Source: Blastocystis sp. Blastoise (taxonomy: Eukaryota; Protista; Bigyra: Opalinata). From it: a stretch of 64,000 nt of DNA. The DNA lies in assembly GCA_039096225.1 (NCBI GenBank), contig JBBPEB010000015.1:2356001-2420000 (forward strand). Direction: 5' to 3'. A program made the translations under genes and the position numbers. Below the pieces are notes generated by a model. That model saw nothing but the letters and a program-made list of their open reading frames with translations, ran no database searches and had not been told where the DNA came from. Shown piece after piece: positions 18,203 through 55,826 of this stretch (its first letter is position 1; every line of letters begins with the position of its first letter).

Positions 18203-18573
18203 CAATATAAATTTATATGTATTAAATATAAAATAGTGTTTACTTTATAAACAACTTATTTTTAAAATCTTATTCAAAAAAATTGATACATAATTAAATT
18301 GCGTTTTTCTTTAAAAAGATAATTTTGGTATTTATGAACGAAATTATACATATTCAGTATGATAGAATTCAGATAGAATACTGAAATACAATAAATTCAT
18401 ATTTTAATTGATACACGCAAATTGATTCGAATCGTGTGTTGTCTCAAGAATTGGGCTTTTAAATTGTATAAATGTGTTCTCCATTCGAACCATAATTTTC
18501 ATTATTGGAAAACAAATTAATCAAATCAAACCAAAACAAATAAGACACTATGGACATTTTTTCAGGTTTCTGT

Positions 18574-18778
18574 CAAAAGGTCCAACGACTTTTTTGTTTT
18601 GGTTTCCCCAGTGGTGAGCAGTGAAAATTTTTAAATATGTAGCTGACAAAAGGTTATTTGATTTTTCTGTTTGGTTTCCCCAGTGGTGGAGCAGTGAAAA
18701 AATTTTAAAGGGTAGCTGACAAAAGGTCCAACGACTTTTTTGCTTTGGTTTCCCCAGTGGTGAGCAGTGAAATTTTTT
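18574..18778. repeat. Three-copy 73-bp tandem repeat with conserved core GGTTTCCCCAGTGGTG(G)AGCAGTGAAA
   Basis: CAAAAGG unit starts at 18574, 18647 and 18720; cores at 18601, 18673 and 18747. Confidence 0.9.
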
Positions 18779-19079
18779 GTCAGAGTTTCAGTGATTTTAT
18801 AAAATCGAAAAGCAGTGCAAAAGTATGACGCACCTTAAAACAATAATTGGCGAATAAAAATGGTTTTAAATATTCTCTATTTTTTCATTTATTGGCTTTT
18901 TTTATTCTTTTTGTGGTGTAATAATAAACGATATAACAAAACAAACAAATTAAATATTATCAAATAATCATAAAAACAAATAATAGAAAACAATAATAAT
19001 AAATATATAAAAAAAAGATAATAAAACATATAATAAATAATATAATAAAATATATATAATATTTAATTTATAATATTTC

Positions 19080-19708
19080 AACCAGGACAGTTTCAGTCTT
19101 TAATTTGCATTTAAGCCTAACCAACCTATATAAAGAGATGATATTAGTTAAGTATTACTAATAATAATATATATATAACATTTTAAAATAATAATAAAAT
19201 AAAAAATATATACCTTTTCTAATCATTACAAGACAGGCAAGGAATCAAAGACAAAGAACCATCCTATAAAAGATATATGATAAATAGTATAATGAATAAA
19301 ACAATATAATTAAATATATATATATACTTTTTATAAACCATTCTCCAATTGGCCAACAACGACAGCAACAGAACTTATGGAAACCTATATAAAGATAGAG
19401 TGAGTTGTAGAATATAATAATATATGATATAATAAAATAATATAGAATAATAAAATATAAATATATACATTACTCCTATATAAATATAAAGTGGGGTTAG
19501 TTATATAATATGTAATAGATAATATAGATATATATGTACCTTTTATTCATGTTGATTCCCTTCATTCTAGACCCAAGCAGCATAACTATAAAAATAATTA
19601 GAAAAAGAAATATATATATATATACCTATAAGAGAACCATAACCACACACAAGAAGGAGCAGAACACTTAAGGAGACCAGGAATAGCCACAGCAAGAAGC
19701 AGAGACAG
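19080..19708 (-). ncRNA. Candidate spliced non-coding (or micropeptide/pseudogene) transcript
   Basis: GC-richer islands bounded by TAG| and |GTAT splice signals (e.g. 19626-19708, 19540-19585, ~19328-19384, ~19213-19263), separated by typical AT-rich introns; no long spliced ORF. Confidence 0.4.
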
Positions 19709-21619
19709 CTACTATAGAAAATGAATGAATAGAGTAGAAAAAATAAAATATAAAGAAACAGCAAACACCTACCATCATAATAGTATCATATGATATGAAA
19801 TAAAGTAATAATTTAATAATACATCATTATAATGATATAAGATATAATAAAATAAATATGTGATAAGTCATGTAGGATTTTGTTTTGTTATAAAAGGGTG
19901 TAATAGGAATTTAGAAGATATAGCTGAAATAATGAAAATAAACATGAATAATCTCATATCTACTAAATATAGAGAATCTTCATCATAAATAAAATGAATG
20001 GTTAAGAATAAAAGAGAAAGAGAAATTTTATTTCTATGAGGAAAATGGATATTGTTATTGTTATTTTCAATTTATCCTAATTATTATTAATACTATAAAA
20101 AATGTTTTATTTTAAAGAATTATATATTTATTTATCATTATAATGTTTTATAATTAGTTTAGACGACAGAAGAGTCATTTTTATAGTTAATTATCAAAAT
20201 TATTCTTAGTATCACTTTGTAAGTATAACTTATTTTTTAAATAAACCTAGGCTATAATACAGACTTATAGAGAAGACCCTGAGACTTCTAATCCCAAAAC
20301 AAAAGTGATTCATATAATTCAGAATGATTGTCTGAATCTTCATTTAGAGTATTAATTTGAGTCACATACTTTCAATAAAATGATTAAATAAAGAGAAAGA
20401 TGATAAAAAAGGTCTAGAGTCAAAATTGTTATGAAATATCAACTTTTTAATCTATTTGTGTAGATTTTCAATTATTTTAATATCATAATATGACTGAAAA
20501 GAAACAAAAAACATTTTAAAGTCAATTAAGTCAACAATTGTAATCAAGTAAAAGTCTTTTAAAACCTCTTCATAAACTCAAAACGTATAGAGTGAGTGTT
20601 TTCCAGTTAAAATAATGTTTATTGTTACAATAATATCAAAAACAAATCAAATTATTATTTTATAATTACTCAAGAACAACTTTTTCTATCAACTAAGGAC
20701 TCATAGCTATCAAATATGCATATGAATAAGCAAAAATAATATTTTGTATATTTTTAATTGAAAAGTCAGAATCGTGTTGATAGTTTACTATAAAACAAAT
20801 GCAAAAATCACTTTTTTATCAAAAAAATGTTTAATCTCATTAATCGTTATATTCATGATTTATTCATTGTCTACTTACCGTGTTTAATCATCTTCAGTGA
20901 TTTTTAGTGAAACTAAAATTATTTCAAATATATATTTTATTTTCAATAATAACAGAAACGTCTCATATTGCATATTTAGTGTCTAAATGAAGTTTAAACA
21001 TGACAGTGATATCAATTAATCAAAAATTATAAAATATAAAGAATCTCCATTTTTATGACTTGTCTTAAATCATGTTAAGAGTAAATGAATGAATAGTTTC
21101 ATTAGTCATCTGTATGATTTTAGTATTATTTTCAAAATATTTTGTTTTTTAACAAGAATAAATTCTTAATTTATTGTTTATCAAGTCAAAAATGTATTTA
21201 AATGATTTTTTTCTACTGTACAAGGATACACTGATCATATGAAAAAAAAATTGCACAGAATCTTTTGATAATCTATTTTTGAAAAATGAGAATTATTTTT
21301 TGGAACTAAACTAATATTTTACGTATAAACATTATAAAATCTCCTGAACAATCTTTTGAGAAGATTCTGTGTTCGACAATACACTTAATTAAGTAATTGA
21401 TAATTGTTGGAATATTTTTGTATTGAATAAACTGTTTTGAATGTTTCTATGAATCATCTATATACAACTAATACATTTAATGATTAAATAAATACACATA
21501 TAAAGAAAAAAATAGTAATTAACATAATTGATCTTCACCTCTCTGAATATATATTTTTTGAAAATCTTATACAATATGAATATTAAAACCTATATATACA
21601 TAAAATAGTTATATAAACG

Positions 21620-21688
21620 ACCTTAAGACAGGAATTGAACCTGTTTTCAATCATAAATTGATTGAAACTTACCAATTTAAGCTTAAGG
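21620..21688 (-). ncRNA. tRNA-like cloverleaf (non-decoding tRNA mimic)
   Basis: Minus strand: CCTTAAG CTTA-AATTGG-TAAG TTTCAATC-AATTTAT-GATTGAAA ACAGG-TTCAATT-CCTGT CTTAAGG T. Stems of 7+4+8+5 bp are all Watson-Crick; D-loop GG and T-loop/B-box GGTTCAATTCC present; no 8-9 linker, no variable loop, no U33. Confidence 0.75.
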
Positions 21689-21959
21689 ATAATATAGAGG
21701 AAAAGTAATATAAAGGGATATATAATAATACGAAAATAAGTATGAAAAAAAATATATGTATAAGAGAAAACGATGCTAAATATAGGAGGGAAAAATGAAA
21801 AGAGAATAAATAGAGAAAAATATAAAGTTAATGAGATAGGGATAATTAATGAAATTAATAAAAAAGAATTAAAATAATAATATAGAGAAAAAAAAATATA
21901 AATATAGAGATCTATAAGTAAGGTATTGAAGAGAAGATTAGAGGAGAAATGGGAAAAGC

Positions 21960-22348
21960 ATGAGGAAGAAGAAGAAGAAGAAGAAGAAGATGATGATGAT
22001 GATGATGATGATGAAGAAGAAGAAGAATATGTAGAAGATGATGATGATGATGAAGAAGAAGAAAAAGAAGAATATGTAAAAGAAGAAGAAGATGAAGAAG
22101 AATATGTAGAAGAAGAAGAAGAATATGTAGAAGAAGAAGAAGAATATGTAGAAGAAGAAGAAGAAGAAGAAGAAGAAGAAGAAGAAGAATATGTAGAAGA
22201 ATATGTAGAAGATGATGAAGATGAAGAAGATGAAGAAGAAGAAGAAGAAGAAGAATATGTAGGAGAATATGTAGAAGATGATGATGATGAAGAAGAAGAA
22301 GAAGAAGGAGAATATGTAGAAGATGATGATGAAGAAGAAGAAGAAGAA

Positions 22349-22381
<33 letters not shown>

Positions 22382-22560
22382 GAAGAAGAATATGTAGAAG
22401 ATGATGATGAAGAAGAAGAAGGAAATAATTATAACCAGAAGAAGATGGAGAATAAATAGAATAATAAGAAGATGCTTGTGAAGAAGAGATAAGGAAGAAG
22501 AAGAAGAAGAAGAAGAAGAAGATGAAGAAGATGAGAAGAAGAAGATGAAGAAGATAATAT
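21960..22560 (+). repeat. Compound (GAA)n/(GAT)n microsatellite punctuated by GAATATGTA
   Basis: Directly visible triplet runs; they produce spurious poly-E/D, poly-F/I and poly-L/H ORFs. Confidence 0.9.
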
Positions 22561-23640
22561 TGAGATGTATATGAAAAAAATAAGAGATAACAGAATAATA
22601 TATAGAAAATGTAGAATAAAAATAATAAGATGAATAAGAAGAAGATAATGAAATGCAGATGAAGATGAAGAAAACGAAAAAGGAGATAAGAAAGAAGAAT
22701 AAGAAGAAGGAAATGAATAAATACAAGAAGAAGATGAAGAATAAATAGATTAAAAAGAAGAACAAGAAGATGAAGGTGAAGAGCTAAGAAAGAAGGTGAA
22801 GAAGAATAGAAAGAAGGTAAAAAATAAAAAGAAAAGTAAGATGAGAATGAAGAAGATGAACAAGAAGAGAAAGAAGAATGAACAAGAAACATATATTGAG
22901 ATGCAGAAAAATAAAAATAAATAAAATAAATAGATCGATAGATAGATAGATAGATATATAGATAGACAGAAGGAGATAGAGATGGAAATATAGAAAGAGA
23001 AATACAAAGATAAAAATAGATAGATAGATAGATAGATGAATAGAAAGAAAGAAGAAAAGAGAGACATAAAGAAGAAATTAGATAGAAAGAGATAGAATTC
23101 TATATAGAATGAGAGATATACAAAAGAAATCAAATGAAATAGAGAATAAGATAAAAATAGATACAAGAATAAAGATAAAAAGAGAAATAGAGGAGTAGGG
23201 AAGGTGTATAAAAAAGAAAGAATATAAAGATAGGTAGAGAGGAATTGAGAAGGATAGAGAAGGAGGAGGAAAACAGATAGAATTGGAAGACGAAGAAAAG
23301 AAGATGAGACGAAGAAGGGAGAAAAAAGGAGCAGGAAGTGAATATCAAGAAAGATAAATTTATATAGAAAAAAATTAGAAAGAAAAATACATACAAAGAA
23401 AACGATAGGGAATGATAGAGAGAATTATAATTTGAATGACATAGAGAGAAGGAGAGACAAAGCAAGATAAAGAAGTATAATAGAAAAAACAAAGAAGAAA
23501 AAAAGAAGAATAAAAAAAGAAAAGATAGAACAATAGTATATGAGAGAAGAAAGAGACAGAAAGAAAACGGGAAATAGGGTAGAGACATAGAAGGTAATAA
23601 AATATATAGAAGGGGAGAGGGGATTGAGATAAATAAATAA

Positions 23641-23753
<113 letters not shown>

Positions 23754-25764
23754 GATAGAAGAATACCGAAAGATATAGAGAAGGAGATAAATATTAATAA
23801 AAAGGAAAATATGGATAGAGAGGAGATAGAATCAAACAGAGAAGGAGAAGTAGATAAAAGTTGAGAGAAGGAGAAGTAGATTAAAATAAAAACAAATAGC
23901 AAGAGTTAAAAGGAAGAAGGGAAGAATATAGAATGATTTGAAGAATGAGATGTATATAGAAGTGAATAGAAGGAAATAGAGAAGGAGAAGTAGATAGAAA
24001 AGATTAAAAATAGAAGGAGATAGAAAGATAAGAGAATGATATAGATACAATAGAATGAGATAGAGAAGATAAAGTAGATAGAAATGGATAGAAATAAGAA
24101 AAATAAATAGGATAAGAGAGAAAGAGAGATAAAAGGATATAAAAGGATATAGAAGGAGAGAAAGCGGATTGAGATGTAGTAAGATGGAAGGATGTAGATG
24201 GAGATAGAGAAGTAGATAGAAGATGATGGAGAATAAAGAGGAGATAGAAGAGGAGATAGAAGGAGAAAAAGAAGAAGAGGAAGTAAATTAAGTTAGAAGG
24301 AGATATAATAAGATAGAGAAGTAGATATACGTAGATATAAGGAAATATACGAAGATATAAGTAGATAAGAGAAAATAGAAGGAAATAGAGAATGAGATTG
24401 AGACACATAAATGAGGTAGAATGAGATAGATAAGGATAGAGAAATATGAAGAGAAATATAGGAATACAGAGAGATAGAATGATGTTGAAAGAGAAAGAAA
24501 AGGAAAGACTGAAGATTGAGACAGAAGGAGTAGCTGAGATAAAAGGAAGATAGAGAAGGAAATTGAAAGATGAAGGAAGAAGGAGAGAAGATGAAAGAAG
24601 AAGAATATAGAAGAAGATAGAGAATGAGATAATAGGGATAGAAAGAGAAAAATAGGAAAAAAGATGGTTAGAAGAAAATAGAAAAGGAGAAAGAAGGAGA
24701 GATAGAAGGAGAAATAGAAGGATATAAAAGAGATTAAGAAAGAAGTTAGAGACAAGAAGATATAGATATATAGAAAGAAATAAAAGGATTAAATAGAAGA
24801 TTAAGATAGAAGAAAAGAGACAAAATAGAAGTAGATATAACAATATAGAGAATGAAAGGATAGAAATAAAAATAGAAAATAGATAACTAGAACATAAGAA
24901 TATATAATAATAGAGAGAAGGAGAGAGAGAAGAAAAAGTAGATATAAAGTGGAAAAGGAGACATAGAAGGAAATATAAAAGGAAACAAGAAGGTAGAAAG
25001 AGACATATAAGATAAAATAGACAGGGACAGAGAGAAATAAATGGAAAAAGAATAAGGATAAAGATGGATACGAGAATAGAGAGGGAGAGAAGGAAGATTG
25101 AGATAGAATTATACAGAAAGAGGAGAGAAGGAAGATAAAGAAGGAAAATAGGGCAGTAAAAAAAAAGGGAATCAGAAGGAGGAGAGAAGAAGTATGAGAA
25201 GAATAGAAAGAAGGAAGAGGAGGAAGGCAAATAATAGAAGAGAACTATATATATAATAAATAGTGATATAAATATAAATAAGAAGATGAAGATCTGAAAA
25301 AAGCAAAGAATTATATGGAGAAGAAGAAGAAGAAGAGGAAGAGGAAGAAAAGGAGGGTATACACTAATACATGTCGAGGAAAAAGAAGTATAGAATAAGG
25401 AGAAGAGGATAACAGGATAAAAGAAAAAGACATAACGAAATACAATGTAAATAGAATAGTGATTAAGAAAGAGTAATGAAAGAGTGATATAAAAGGGAAG
25501 CGAAGATAAGAGAGAGGTATAATTAAAAAAAAGAAAAATAAAGGAATTTAGATAGAAGAAAAAATAAAAGAAAAATGAAGATCTGAGGAAGATAATGAAT
25601 CAAAGGGAGAGACAAGGATATAGGCTGGAGACAAGGCATAGGAAGAAGTAATAAAGAAAGAAGATGAAGAAATAAGGAGATAAAAGTGTAGAAGGAAGAA
25701 AATGAAGAAGAGAGAAGAAGGAATCATTTTGTGTAAGAAGAAGAAATAAAGAAGAACTAGATAA

Positions 25765-25795
<31 letters not shown>

Positions 25796-27452
25796 ACATA
25801 CCTAATAGAAAAAAATGAATTTGGTGATGTTGAGTCATAGGGAAAGATAACCAACAGAAACAGTAGAAAACAACCTAAATAAATAAATAATAATAAATAA
25901 AAATATAAAAATAATGAAAATAAATAATAAAATGAATTAGAATTCTAATTCAAGAAAAAAAAAAGAAAGTTAATAATAGATAGAATGAATATACGATAAG
26001 TATTTTATCATATAATATTACAGCAATATAAAAAATAAAAAGATAAGAGATAATTATAAAAATAAATAAATACATATATACTTTGAAAACAGTTTGACAT
26101 CATAGACGTTGTTGACATGGACTGAAGAGGACTCTTATAACCACGGACGAGCAGGAACCTATACATGCTAGAGAATGGGAGAATGTTAATATGGGTAAAG
26201 AATAAAAAATAGCAATATACATACAAGGGAACAGTCTGAAGTTAAAATGAGCTTCTATTTTTAAAAATAAAGGCAAATAAAAATAGAATAAAAATAAAAA
26301 AAATATGTAACAAATGAAATATTTTCTAAGTCAATAGGCTCAATAGCGTATGGGTGTCTTCAGGTCTTAAAAGAAAAATCATTTTTGCGGGAATATCAAG
26401 AAATTCAAAAAAGTATATTTTCCCTCCTTTTTTCGCTGTCACTTTTTTTTAATATTTTTGACTTTATAGTATTAAAATCGATTCTTACAGGCATGTATAG
26501 ACACTTTATACCACTTTTGAAACTAAAAATCAAATATTCAAAAATGAGTGAAAAATCACAACAAGCAAGAAAAACAATTTTGTAAGCTGAGTATGTTGTG
26601 TATAAGTATGTCTAACAACAGAGATGATAAAAACGCACAACTCCTCTTGGTTTAGGACATAATTATGAATTCTCTTAAAAAAGCTATTTTAAACCTTAAA
26701 ACGATACCCTGAACTATAAATCAAGTCCTGAATGATATTCTAAAGTCATATTTTTAAAAACAGGTTTATTGACGATAATCAATAAACAAAAACAAGAGCT
26801 TCTGTTTTACTTTTCTTTTTTGAATTTTTAATTGTTTTGACTTTCTAGGGTAGTTGGCTAAAAGAATGCTGTCGTCTTTAGGCTAAAAAATTATGAATAA
26901 AAAAGTCAAGTCATTTTATTGTTTTTTCCTTGGGAAATCAAAAAGAAGAAATTTTTAGGTGTGTGTTGATTTAGGCTGTATAATGGTTTATATTGTAAAA
27001 GGACTTGACGAGAATGATTGAAATGATAATATATCACTCAGAGAATACACAAATTTTAAAAACTTCTCACTCATGTAATCCATTCCTGAATTATAGACTT
27101 CAGAGAAAAAATTAAAGTCTTTTTGGTTTTAAACAGTCATTTTAAATCATAAAACACTGTAAAATAGTCAATATTTAGAATGTCTATGATTATATAAATA
27201 AACAATATATTTTGTAGAGTTATTTTTAAGTTTTTCTCGTCAAAAAGAGAGAAACTTGACAAGTTGGCGGACACTCTTTTCTCGAGTTTAGGCCAACGTA
27301 TTTTTGATTAAAAAATCCCAGTCATTTTGTTGTTTCTCTTACGGGAAATAGGGTCAAAAAAACACAAAATGTCCATAGTGGATAATAAAATGAAAAACAA
27401 CAACATAAAAAAGATAATTATATTGAATAGATTGATTATCTTATAAACTGAA

Positions 27453-42186: not shown

Positions 42187-42455
42187 TTTCAGTATATATA
42201 TATATAATATAATTACAATATAATAATCATTATATATATATAGTGTGTGAATACTCCTGAAGATCCCCTTAAGGTCGTTCATATGGATTGTACTCTCCCT
42301 ATGGACATGGAAACAGAAGATAACATGATGTATCATGGACCTCCATTCAAATCTCTTGACGATAAAGTTCAACAGGAGTAATGCTATACCATTATTCTTA
42401 TTTTGATTATTAATTATTTTTATCTTAGTTATTTTTATATAGATTTTCATTTCTA

Positions 42456-45996: not shown

Positions 45997-47494
45997 ATTA
46001 AATAACAAACAAAAAAGTATTATTATGTGTACTTTTGTTTTGTATTATTGTATTGTTATATCTTTTCTCTTATTGTTTTTATGTCATGTCTGGTTAGACT
46101 GAATTAGGGTAAAAACAATTGGCTTGATCTTGATGATCACGTATTCGTCACTATTCGTTACAGTCTGTCAGAAAAAACGAAAAACGAAAATAAGATTCTT
46201 TTTTGTTTTCTTCGTCTTTGTACTAGTGTTCTTGATCTCTCTCTTTTTCATATCATACAAACGAATTCATATACATGTTTGCACATAGTTATACAAAAAA
46301 ATAGCATGTATATGTGTTTTCAATACAAAAACTAACAAAGATATAGTTTTTATCACTCATAGTCTCTTAACCACAAATATTTTTCATAAAACACAAATCA
46401 ACGAGAAATGCGATAGGATGATGACAAGTTTAGAACGTTTTTATTGGCGAAACGCTTGACAAACTGCTAGTCATTTTGTTTTCCAATATAACCACCAGTA
46501 TTCTCTATAAGACATATTATTATAAGCACATATTAGCTAAAACCAACTGATCTTTCTAAAGTTGTATTATAGTTTGAAAGTAATTAACAAATAAAAGAGA
46601 GATGGTTGTTGTAACTCATCTTATTGTTTGAAATATGTTAGAGGACTTACAAATTTGTGTTGAATTCAATACACTGAATGCATCAATGAGATAAGATTTT
46701 AAAATAAAAGTAACATTTTACACGACATTCCTCTTTCATCTAAGTAAATAGCTAGCTAACATTAAATCTATATTTTTAATGTATGTGTGATATAAATTCC
46801 ATTCATTTAAACATAAATATAGCCATATAATTAATTTTATAACAATTTTTTTATTTTATCAAATAAAATAAAAATTTCTTATAAAAATTTTACATAAATT
46901 TTCTTGCTTTCAATTTTTTATGAATAAGTTATTTATTAAATCATTTAAAATGTATTTTTGTAAGTAGTTTAGCGTTTGCATACTTTTTATGAGGGATATA
47001 ATACATTTTTTACTCATTATGAAAATAATTAGGTTTCATTTATTTGAAAAAATCAAAGTTTGATATCATAAGATAATGAATATGAAGTAAAAAATAGATA
47101 CCCATAACACACACGTTTTCCATTCAAATATGAAAATTTAATTCGTTTGATTTTTTAGAATAGCTATTGTTAAGTATTCTTGAAAACAATTGATAAGATA
47201 TGAGCCTATTTTACAATCAAAAGAAAGAAATGAGTTGATAAGGATTTGTTCGTAGCGGTTTAAAACTATTTCTGAAGCTCTATGAAAGCATGTTATATTT
47301 GAAAACATCTACTATACTGATTAGAAAGCTCTAAAAGTAATATTCAACAAATACTGAAATTGATTGAAATCTCATTCAGAAATGTTTAAAATGAAAATAG
47401 TAGTTTTTGAGTATCATAATTTATATTCCCGCAAATATTTTTGATAATTATTTGTATTTCCATATATAGATTCATAAAAACAAGAATTTCAGAA

Positions 47495-47567
47495 GCCTCG
47501 ATAGCTCAGTCGGGAGAGCGTATGACTGAAGATCATAAGGTCCCTGGTTCGATCCCGGGTCAAGGCG
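47495..47567 (+). tRNA. trnF: tRNA-Phe (GAA)
   Basis: 73-nt cloverleaf GCCTCGA TA GCTC AGTCGGGA GAGC G TATGA CT GAA GA TCATA AGGTC CCTGG TTCGATC CCGGG TCAAGGC G; A and B boxes intact; anticodon 47528-47530; one C5-A68 mismatch. Confidence 0.95.
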
Positions 47568-47570
47568 TAA

Positions 47571-47592
47571 TTTTATTTTTGTTTATTTTTTT
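47571..47592 (+). terminator. Oligo-T runs after the tRNA (probable Pol III terminator)
   Basis: TTTT, TTTTT and TTTTTTT within 25 nt of the tRNA 3' end. Confidence 0.6.
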
Positions 47593-47599
47593 AGATTCT

Positions 47600-55826
<8,227 letters not shown>

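Follow-up and report, generated by a model that had tools for sequence, protein, structure and literature searches.

A non-decoding, tRNA-shaped cloverleaf carried as fixed cargo by a CACTA-type DNA transposon of Blastocystis: a candidate mark for RNA processing

The DNA analysed here is a stretch of 64,000 nucleotides from Blastocystis sp. Blastoise (contig JBBPEB010000015.1, positions 2,356,001–2,420,000; hereafter the window), whose minus strand at 21620–21688 folds into a non-decoding cloverleaf with the shape of a transfer RNA (tRNA). We found that this cloverleaf is not a lone gene: a non-autonomous CACTA-type DNA transposon carries it as fixed cargo, and it belongs to a genome-wide family of cloverleaves whose stems differ by paired changes. 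An earlier examination of the window (the original prediction) had proposed a selected tRNA mimic like mascRNA and menRNA, or a novel small RNA made by RNA polymerase III (Pol III); the selected, non-decoding mimic is upheld by our results, whereas the lone host gene is not. Our preferred reading, to which we assign a probability of about 40%, is that the cloverleaf would be a mascRNA-type tRNA mimic that acts at the RNA level and is cut from the transcript of the transposon. The parts of the cloverleaf are listed here in window coordinates.

21620..21688, minus strand: tRNA-like cloverleaf, variant V1, 69 nt (68 nt plus the discriminator T), without linkers
21682..21688, minus strand: 5′ strand of the acceptor stem, CCTTAAG, pairing with CTTAAGG at 21621–21627 (7 bp)
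21621..21627, minus strand: 3′ strand of the acceptor stem, CTTAAGG, with the discriminator T at 21620
21668..21681, minus strand: D arm, CTTA-AATTGG-TAAG, 4-bp stem and 6-nt loop
21645..21667, minus strand: third (anticodon-equivalent) arm, TTTCAATCA / loop ATTTA / TGATTGAAA, 9-bp stem and 5-nt loop
21628..21644, minus strand: T arm, ACAGG-TTCAATT-CCTGT, 5-bp stem, including GGTTCAATTCC at 21631–21641

All 25 pairs of this structure are Watson–Crick, and direct reading of the minus strand places no nucleotide between one helix and the next; the last two nucleotides of the D loop are GG, where a tRNA has G18 G19. The 12-bp stack of acceptor and T stems and a T loop of the TTCRANN type closed by G-C are also present, and in an alignment of the cloverleaf with real tRNAs GG and GGTTC.A..CC were invariant. 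Several canonical tRNA traits are missing, namely the 7-nt anticodon loop with U33, the linker nucleotides 8, 9 and 26 and the variable loop; the third loop reaches 7 nt if its last pair opens, but position 33 is then A, not U, and there is no usable anticodon. The minimum-energy structure given by RNAfold is exactly the cloverleaf, at −19.5 kcal/mol, compared with −8.6 ± 2.75 kcal/mol for 200 dinucleotide shuffles (z = −3.96), none of which folded as well. The complementary strand folds equally well because all of the pairs are Watson–Crick. The geometry first described for this site, with helices of 7, 4, 8–9 and 5 bp, a TTCAATT loop, GG, no linkers and no U33, was thus correct in every detail on both reading and folding.

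Programs that detect tRNAs did not recognise the structure, as had been expected. ARAGORN made no call at the cloverleaf, its only tRNA in the window being a tRNA-Phe at 47495–47567, and the Rfam tRNA model (RF00005) remained below its gathering score there, with no tRNA match at E ≤ 10 in a 701-nt search; the best of the weak Rfam matches in that search, an antisense plastid tRNA-shaped model with an E of 0.62, is at chance level. A covariance model (R1), built from two sub-versions of the cloverleaf of this element (V1 and V1b), scores the window cloverleaf at 102 bits. A 17-nt match at window 42268–42284 to the 3′ strand of the acceptor stem and the trailer was discarded as chance.

The cloverleaf lies 3.07 kb inside the transposon, which has the following features.

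18546..27380, no strand assigned: host element, 8,835 bp, a non-autonomous CACTA-type DNA transposon without a convincing open reading frame
18546..18560, plus strand: left terminal inverted repeat, CACTATGGACATTTT, 15 bp
27366..27380, minus strand: right terminal inverted repeat, the same 15 nt inverted
18556..18778, plus strand: three tandem 73-bp subterminal repeats adjoining the left end, from a repeat search
from 21689 for about 4 kb, minus strand: G-poor, pyrimidine-rich low-complexity tract, bordering the cloverleaf exactly at its 5′ end

The genome searched in this work is the assembly to which the window belongs (33.3 Mb; 33,340,088 bases in 34 contigs, about 23% G+C). An 81-nt cloverleaf query was found at 36 places in it, 11 of them 100% identical, and the copies are homologous for kilobases on both sides at 99.9% identity, with the homology stopping sharply at 18545/6 and 27380. 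The terminal sequence CACTATGGACATTTT gave 61 matches, which form about 30 pairs of ends 8.4–8.8 kb apart, and one of these pairs, at C4:2374546–2383380, corresponds to window 18546–27380. The element thus has about 30 to 36 near-identical copies, and the cloverleaf is present in each of them. A T-arm pattern specific to V1 matched exactly 36 genome sites, all of them at one internal position of this element family. The single host gene that had been pictured therefore gives way to 36 copies at one fixed site of a transposon, within a wider family of about 250; a dispersed repeat, which the original prediction had set against its own proposal, is what we found, in the form of a cloverleaf repeated inside transposon copies. 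A tRNA-derived short interspersed nuclear element (SINE) was considered as the source of this repetition and rejected: V1 has no solo copies and neither a tail nor a target duplication of its own, and all 36 copies occupy the one element site.

The resemblance to CACTA/En-Spm (CMC) transposons consists of terminal inverted repeats starting with CACTA, the subterminal repeats and, as placed by coordinates, a Transposase_21 frame in a 15.5-kb element with the same ends. The window element differs in that it has no transposase and carries the 4-kb pyrimidine tract and the tRNA mimic as cargo. Six-frame translation of the 8,835 bp revealed low-complexity frames only, with no protein-like frame and no Transposase_21-type transposase, and no Rfam family matched the element at E ≤ 0.1. 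In the single copy whose two flanks were available, GA stands on each side of the element, a possible 2-bp target duplication (chance about 1 in 16). The 15.5-kb pair of CACTATGGACATTTT ends is located at C23:362896–378401 and encloses a Transposase_21 (PF02992) match of 30.8 bits in a 744-aa open frame at C23:375036–375410. Relative to the element ends, this frame is on the same strand as the window cloverleaf. Judged from the coordinates only, the C23 element is a probable autonomous relative of the 8.8-kb element; it was not among the 40 candidates scored in a DNA search with the right arm, and the V1-specific T-arm pattern found no V1-type cloverleaf inside it.

Further observations concern the same element and its ends. 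A 183-aa open frame on the plus strand (21908–22456), opposite the pyrimidine tract, contains Glu/Asp runs and EEYVEE units and is probably low-complexity noise, although it is the sole long open frame in the element. Three more Transposase_21 frames, of 758 aa each, are located at C5:500192, C19:220920 and C23:205345. Two pairs of CACTATGGACATTTT ends have odd spacings: one of 4.4 kb at C22:28677–33114, perhaps a deletion derivative, with a cloverleaf of another variant (V4) lying 313 bp outside it at C22:33427–33498, and one of 22 kb at C24:351410–373427, which may contain nested insertions.

The wider family was revealed by a pattern anchored on GGTTCAATTCC, which matched 273 genome sites compared with none for the reversed control and hence more than chance would give. 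About 20 of these sites are real tRNA genes; the rest (about 250) share the cloverleaf architecture and fall into at least nine variants, and model R1 finds at least 150 genome sites at E ≤ 0.01. Variants V2–V9 were compared pair by pair, by hand, from the matched sequences. Their acceptor stems read CCTTAAG/CTTAAGG (the window copy), CCTTAAA/TTTAAGG, CCTTAGA/TCTAAGG, TCTTATA/TATAAGA, CTTTATG/CATGAAG (with one U·G), ACTCAAG/CTTGAGT and ACTTAAG/CTTAAGT, with double changes at five of the seven pairs on this hand reading. The D stems CTTA/TAAG, CTCT/AGAG and CTGA/TCAG covary at stem pairs 3 and 4, and the first pair of the T stem is A-T in the window copy and T-A in other variants. The third stems (TTTCAATCA, TTACAATCA, TAACAATCA, AAACAATC, TAGCAATC, TAATAGTTC and TAATAGC, each with its complement) are quite different in sequence from variant to variant at the same length, and the third loops vary but stay short. 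Diverged variants still pair although up to about half of their stem positions are changed. Low-copy variants carry some mismatches, one having two C·A in the acceptor stem and one a degenerate third stem. Against this variation, the GG that ends the D loop on its 3′ side is invariant in every listed variant, and a 15-nt T-arm core, CAGGTTCAATTCCTG, is constant in the listed cloverleaves except for a few low-copy ones (CCTAA for CCTGA, CCTGG, and one with a shortened 3′ strand). On the tRNA-sense strand, a hand count gave about 11 sequence types with G·U wobbles and 5 with C·A mismatches, a weak strand signal.

The two sub-versions of the window's own element provide a second comparison. Between V1 and V1b, the 25 pairs show one compensatory change (A-U to U-A) and one mismatch, in the third stem. 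The cloverleaf is 93% identical between them, compared with 53–56% for the 70 nt upstream and 78–85% for the downstream kilobase. A few other blocks are equally conserved, and three such blocks fold no better than shuffles. On this pattern of change, the cloverleaf is under selection for its shape, because changes in the acceptor, D and third-arm stems are paired and compensatory while the T arm and the D-loop GG stay constant. The proposal of a tRNA-shaped, non-decoding fold selected for its shape is borne out by these comparisons, and a decaying pseudogene, against which the original prediction argued, does not fit the paired changes across variants or the local peak of conservation.

Two origins from known tRNAs were considered. 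The organellar His-Ile-Cys-Ala tRNAs score 17–20 bits with R1, compared with 102 bits for the cloverleaf, and in alignment they share only universal tRNA positions with it; the organellar insertion that had been offered as an alternative is thus not what we see. A recent nuclear pseudogene is not supported either: the closest of the GGTTCAATTCC-containing tRNAs compared, a tRNA-Gly(TCC), reaches 34 bits. Relatives elsewhere were sought in collections that included no other Blastocystis genome: exact patterns gave no match in viral contigs, in prokaryotic genome contigs or, for the specific pattern, in metagenome contigs, and a looser pattern gave three metagenome matches, two of which are ordinary tRNA genes while the third scores 19.6 bits, has junction linkers and was not called by ARAGORN; given exact matching and the make-up of these collections, the blanks carry little weight. 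As a separate observation, the AT-rich His-Ile-Cys-Ala tRNA cluster is present on two contigs in opposite orientation, on C9 near 13.9 kb and on C12 near 5.1 kb, and probably reflects an organelle genome represented twice, or its inverted repeat.

The anatomy of the cloverleaf is close to that of two vertebrate RNAs. In their crystal structures, mascRNA and menRNA show a tRNA-like acceptor stem and T stem-loop, a smaller D stem-loop and a longer anticodon-equivalent stem whose loop is compact; the tRNA junction's eight single-stranded linker residues are absent, and two conserved D-loop guanosines form an elbow with the T loop that is read by RNase P and RNase Z (PMC11693755). The Blastocystis module shares the linker-less junction, the long third stem with its compact loop, the tRNA-like acceptor and T arm, the D-loop GG and the inability to decode, and these features are kept in the variants of the family. 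It differs in size, at 68–69 nt with a full 4-bp D stem and a 6-nt loop compared with about 58–61 nt and a reduced D arm; in setting, as multi-copy transposon cargo in a protist compared with a single syntenic host locus in vertebrates; and in that several variants precede T runs of the Pol III type, with processing predicted only. There is no sequence relation or synteny with MALAT1 or NEAT1, the Rfam matches being at chance level only. The predicted likeness to mascRNA and menRNA therefore holds for the anatomy (PMC11693755) and fails for the surroundings, since mascRNA follows a triple-helix element and no MALAT1-type triple helix lies upstream of the Blastocystis module. The cloverleaf is like mascRNA in design but not a member of that family, and the similarity looks like convergence.

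These features suggest a route by which the module could act. The element would be transcribed on the cloverleaf strand, which is also the transposase-gene strand in the probable autonomous relative, and the transcript would run through the 4-kb G-poor tract. This tract has a GC skew of +0.79 to +0.85 and an AT skew of +0.55 on the plus strand at 22001–26000, and its last 200 nt before the cloverleaf are essentially unstructured (−1.2 kcal/mol, z +0.29); no structure was found in the 150 nt downstream of the cloverleaf. The 68-nt module would then fold alone into an L, with the acceptor/T stack as one long helix of 12 bp and the D-loop GG docked on the T loop. A cut by RNase P on the 5′ side of the module would make the 3′ end of the long RNA, and a cut by RNase Z after the discriminator would release a tRNA-like RNA of about 68 nt, possibly CCA-tailed. 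The transcription, the two cuts and any benefit to the element are what we infer from this arrangement.

We place the chance that such a precursor arises by RNA polymerase II read-through from the promoter of the element somewhat below even odds, with a precursor from the module's own Pol III promoter next in plausibility. Read-through is favoured because the G-poor tract ends exactly at the cloverleaf, both here and in other transposon contexts, because the transposase frame of the probable autonomous relative is on the strand that corresponds to that of the cloverleaf, and because the window copy has no terminator of T5 or more like those of the real tRNA genes described below. The tract also contains T8 runs; these would stop Pol III and so speak for read-through from the element's own promoter.

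For the window copy we slightly favour excision from a longer transcript over a self-contained Pol III gene, which we regard as a possible but doubtful explanation. As a gene of this kind, the cloverleaf would use its box B and a degenerate box A to recruit TFIIIC and Pol III, the precursor would end at a T run, and RNase P and RNase Z would trim it to a stable, non-decoding tRNA-shaped RNA without involvement of the upstream tract; the transposon would merely carry the gene, or would profit from TFIIIC/Pol III occupancy or from the RNA. The sequence GGTTCAATTCC (21631–21641) is a perfect box B (consensus GGTTCGANNCC), occurs as the same 11-mer in this genome's real genes for tRNA-Gly and tRNA-Asp and is the same in every listed cloverleaf, but conservation of the T loop is required by the RNA elbow itself, and the box is therefore not independent evidence. 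The sequence AGCTTAAATTGG is similar, apart from one extra base, to the common box-A region AGCTCAGTTGG, at an A-to-B spacing of about 42 nt; it matches the 3′ half of the box A TRGCNNAGTGG and leaves the 5′ half unmatched. Pol III units derived from tRNAs are common in mobile elements, SINEs among them. A Pol III gene would, however, leave unexplained why, in several transposon contexts, the cloverleaf is where the G-poor tract stops. It would also need a terminator, and there is only one T run near the 3′ end of the window cloverleaf.

21602..21605, minus strand: T4, at +15 to +18 counted from the cloverleaf's 3′ end

No run of T5 or more was found within 50 nt of this end, and in the V1b sub-version the first run of T4 or more comes at +54, yet this sub-version is present in 24 copies. 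In all 14 real nuclear tRNA genes of this genome that were examined (Phe, three Gly, eight Asp and two selenocysteine), a run of T5 or more starts by +9, and in 13 of the 14 by +5; in the genome background, T5 or more occurs within 10 nt at 5.3% and within 15 nt at 7.6%, and T4 or more within 20 nt at 21.5%. Among the sister variants, whose downstream T runs were read for lineages other than V7 and V8, V3 is followed by T5–T7 at +5, V4 by T6–T7 at +11 to +12, V5 by T10 at +10 and several V2 sub-lineages by T5–T6 at +12 to +13. These runs are far above background and, with the perfect box B, point to Pol III and away from read-through. Because of the T runs, the perfect box B and the half-matched box A, the family may descend from Pol III units or in part still consist of them. 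Whether excised or transcribed as a gene, the product would be an RNA shaped for handling by RNase P and RNase Z.

We consider each of the remaining explanations improbable. A TFIIIC-binding box-B site of the extra-TFIIIC or tDNA-barrier type could shape the chromatin of the transposon, with the fold incidental. Barrier activity of tDNA through TFIIIC is established in yeasts, and a T-arm core that is constant save for a few low-copy copies, while everything else varies, is what such a site would leave. TFIIIC binding to DNA would not need the compensatory changes that keep four helices, however, and the conserved D-loop GG fits an RNA elbow; we give this explanation a small probability. Slightly less probable again is a neutral relic left by a transposon's single capture of a tRNA gene or pseudogene, with a perfection owed only to the youth of the copies. 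The 11 identical copies and the 99.9% identity of the element do mean that the perfection of one copy says little, but this would not account for diverged variants that still pair, for a cloverleaf that stands as a local peak of conservation over flanks of 53–85% identity between sub-versions, for the distance to the closest real tRNAs or for the clean loss, rather than erosion, of the linkers and anticodon loop. The least probable, and very much so in our estimation, is a cruciform or single-stranded cloverleaf of the DNA itself that serves transposition through transposase recognition or pausing, or in rolling-circle elements. Equal folding of both strands would be expected of it, but the element is a CACTA transposon of the cut-and-paste kind whose nearer end is 3 kb away from the module, the asymmetric tRNA features (TTCAATT loop, GG) would be meaningless for a cruciform, and the wobble pairs favour one strand, if with a weak bias.

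Besides the T runs of the sister variants, several points weigh against our preferred reading of the cloverleaf as a mimic cut from the transcript of the element. The 200 nt upstream contain no A-rich tract, U-rich motifs or triple helix of the MALAT1 type, so that a 3′ end made by RNase P would be unprotected, unlike that of MALAT1. Movement of a non-autonomous DNA transposon does not depend on its being transcribed, and a benefit is therefore hard to see. An acceptor/T minihelix would suffice for RNase P and RNase Z, which leaves the conserved long third arm unaccounted for. Many of the copies are recent, and the independent events of change are far fewer than the copy number; the covariation is a hand reading of the matches and not a formal statistic. 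The case as a whole is built on DNA sequence and a predicted fold.

Comparison with other tRNA-shaped units places the module further. A nuclear tRNA gene (Pol III type 2) has in common with it the 7-bp acceptor stem, the 5-bp T stem, the TTCAATT loop with G-C closing, the GG and the box B; the module differs in being without nucleotides 8, 9 and 26 or a variable loop, in its 9-bp third stem and in having no T5 by +9. SINE heads and the vtRNAs of murid gammaherpesvirus 68, which are cut by tRNA-processing enzymes, resemble it as non-decoding tRNA-shaped modules with an intact box B on selfish elements. Stems kept by covariation set the Blastocystis family apart from SINE heads, in which this is usually not so, and the window cloverleaf has no downstream hairpins like those of the units that join a vtRNA to microRNAs.

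In tRNA punctuation, tRNA shapes (including t-elements) serve as cutting marks for RNase P and RNase Z in long organellar transcripts. A similar layout was observed in another transposon family of this genome, which carries two mimics that bracket about 4.2 kb. Its cloverleaves, V2 (TCTTATA..TATAAGA) and V3 (CTTTATG..CATGAAG), occur as 12 same-strand pairs 4.15–4.34 kb apart on contigs C1, C3, C5, C6, C7, C8 and C10 (for example C3:436452/440633 and C6:12709/16930). V2 always comes first in the sense direction and is mostly without a T run close by, whereas V3 has its T5–T7 at +5, a layout that resembles tRNA punctuation. The Blastocystis modules differ from organellar punctuation in being nuclear, transposon-borne and not derived from the organellar tRNAs compared, and their function is putative.

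Several observations on the real tRNA genes of this genome were made in passing. ARAGORN called two 87-nt tRNA-SeC(TCA) genes, on C5 near 69.9 kb (plus strand) and on C14 near 273 kb (minus strand), each followed by T5–T6, which hints at selenocysteine decoding in this protist. tRNA-Asp(GTC) genes form arrays in both orientations with a spacing of about 400 bp at C3:1118208–1121219 and neighbouring positions, with at least six genes within 3 kb, and at C14:755126–758137. Directly after the tRNA of the window, tRNA-Phe(GAA) on the plus strand, come very long open frames, one of 2034 aa and one of 747 aa (47441–55826, plus strand).

The genome paper for this strain does not mention tRNAs or Helitrons and does not describe the cloverleaf family (PMC12129017), and a literature search found no account of an element like this, whether in Blastocystis or in DNA transposons. 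The strain is cultured and RNA sequencing data are published (PMC12129017), and the natural variants form a ready-made series of compensatory mutations. We consider it conceivable, if rather unlikely, that the DNA transposons of a stramenopile gut protist independently evolved, or share, a mascRNA-type mimic that hands their non-coding transcripts to tRNA-processing enzymes. If so, nuclear transposon RNAs would be punctuated by RNase P and RNase Z with the release of a tRNA-shaped small RNA, the first such system outside the vertebrate MALAT1 and NEAT1 loci and the first on mobile DNA. If the module proved to be only a small-RNA gene of the Pol III type carried by a transposon, it would still represent a new family of non-decoding tRNA-like RNAs. 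A covarying, linker-less mimic borne by several hundred transposon copies in a protist would mean that this RNA design arose more than once and that tRNA processing or Pol III can be exploited by mobile DNA.

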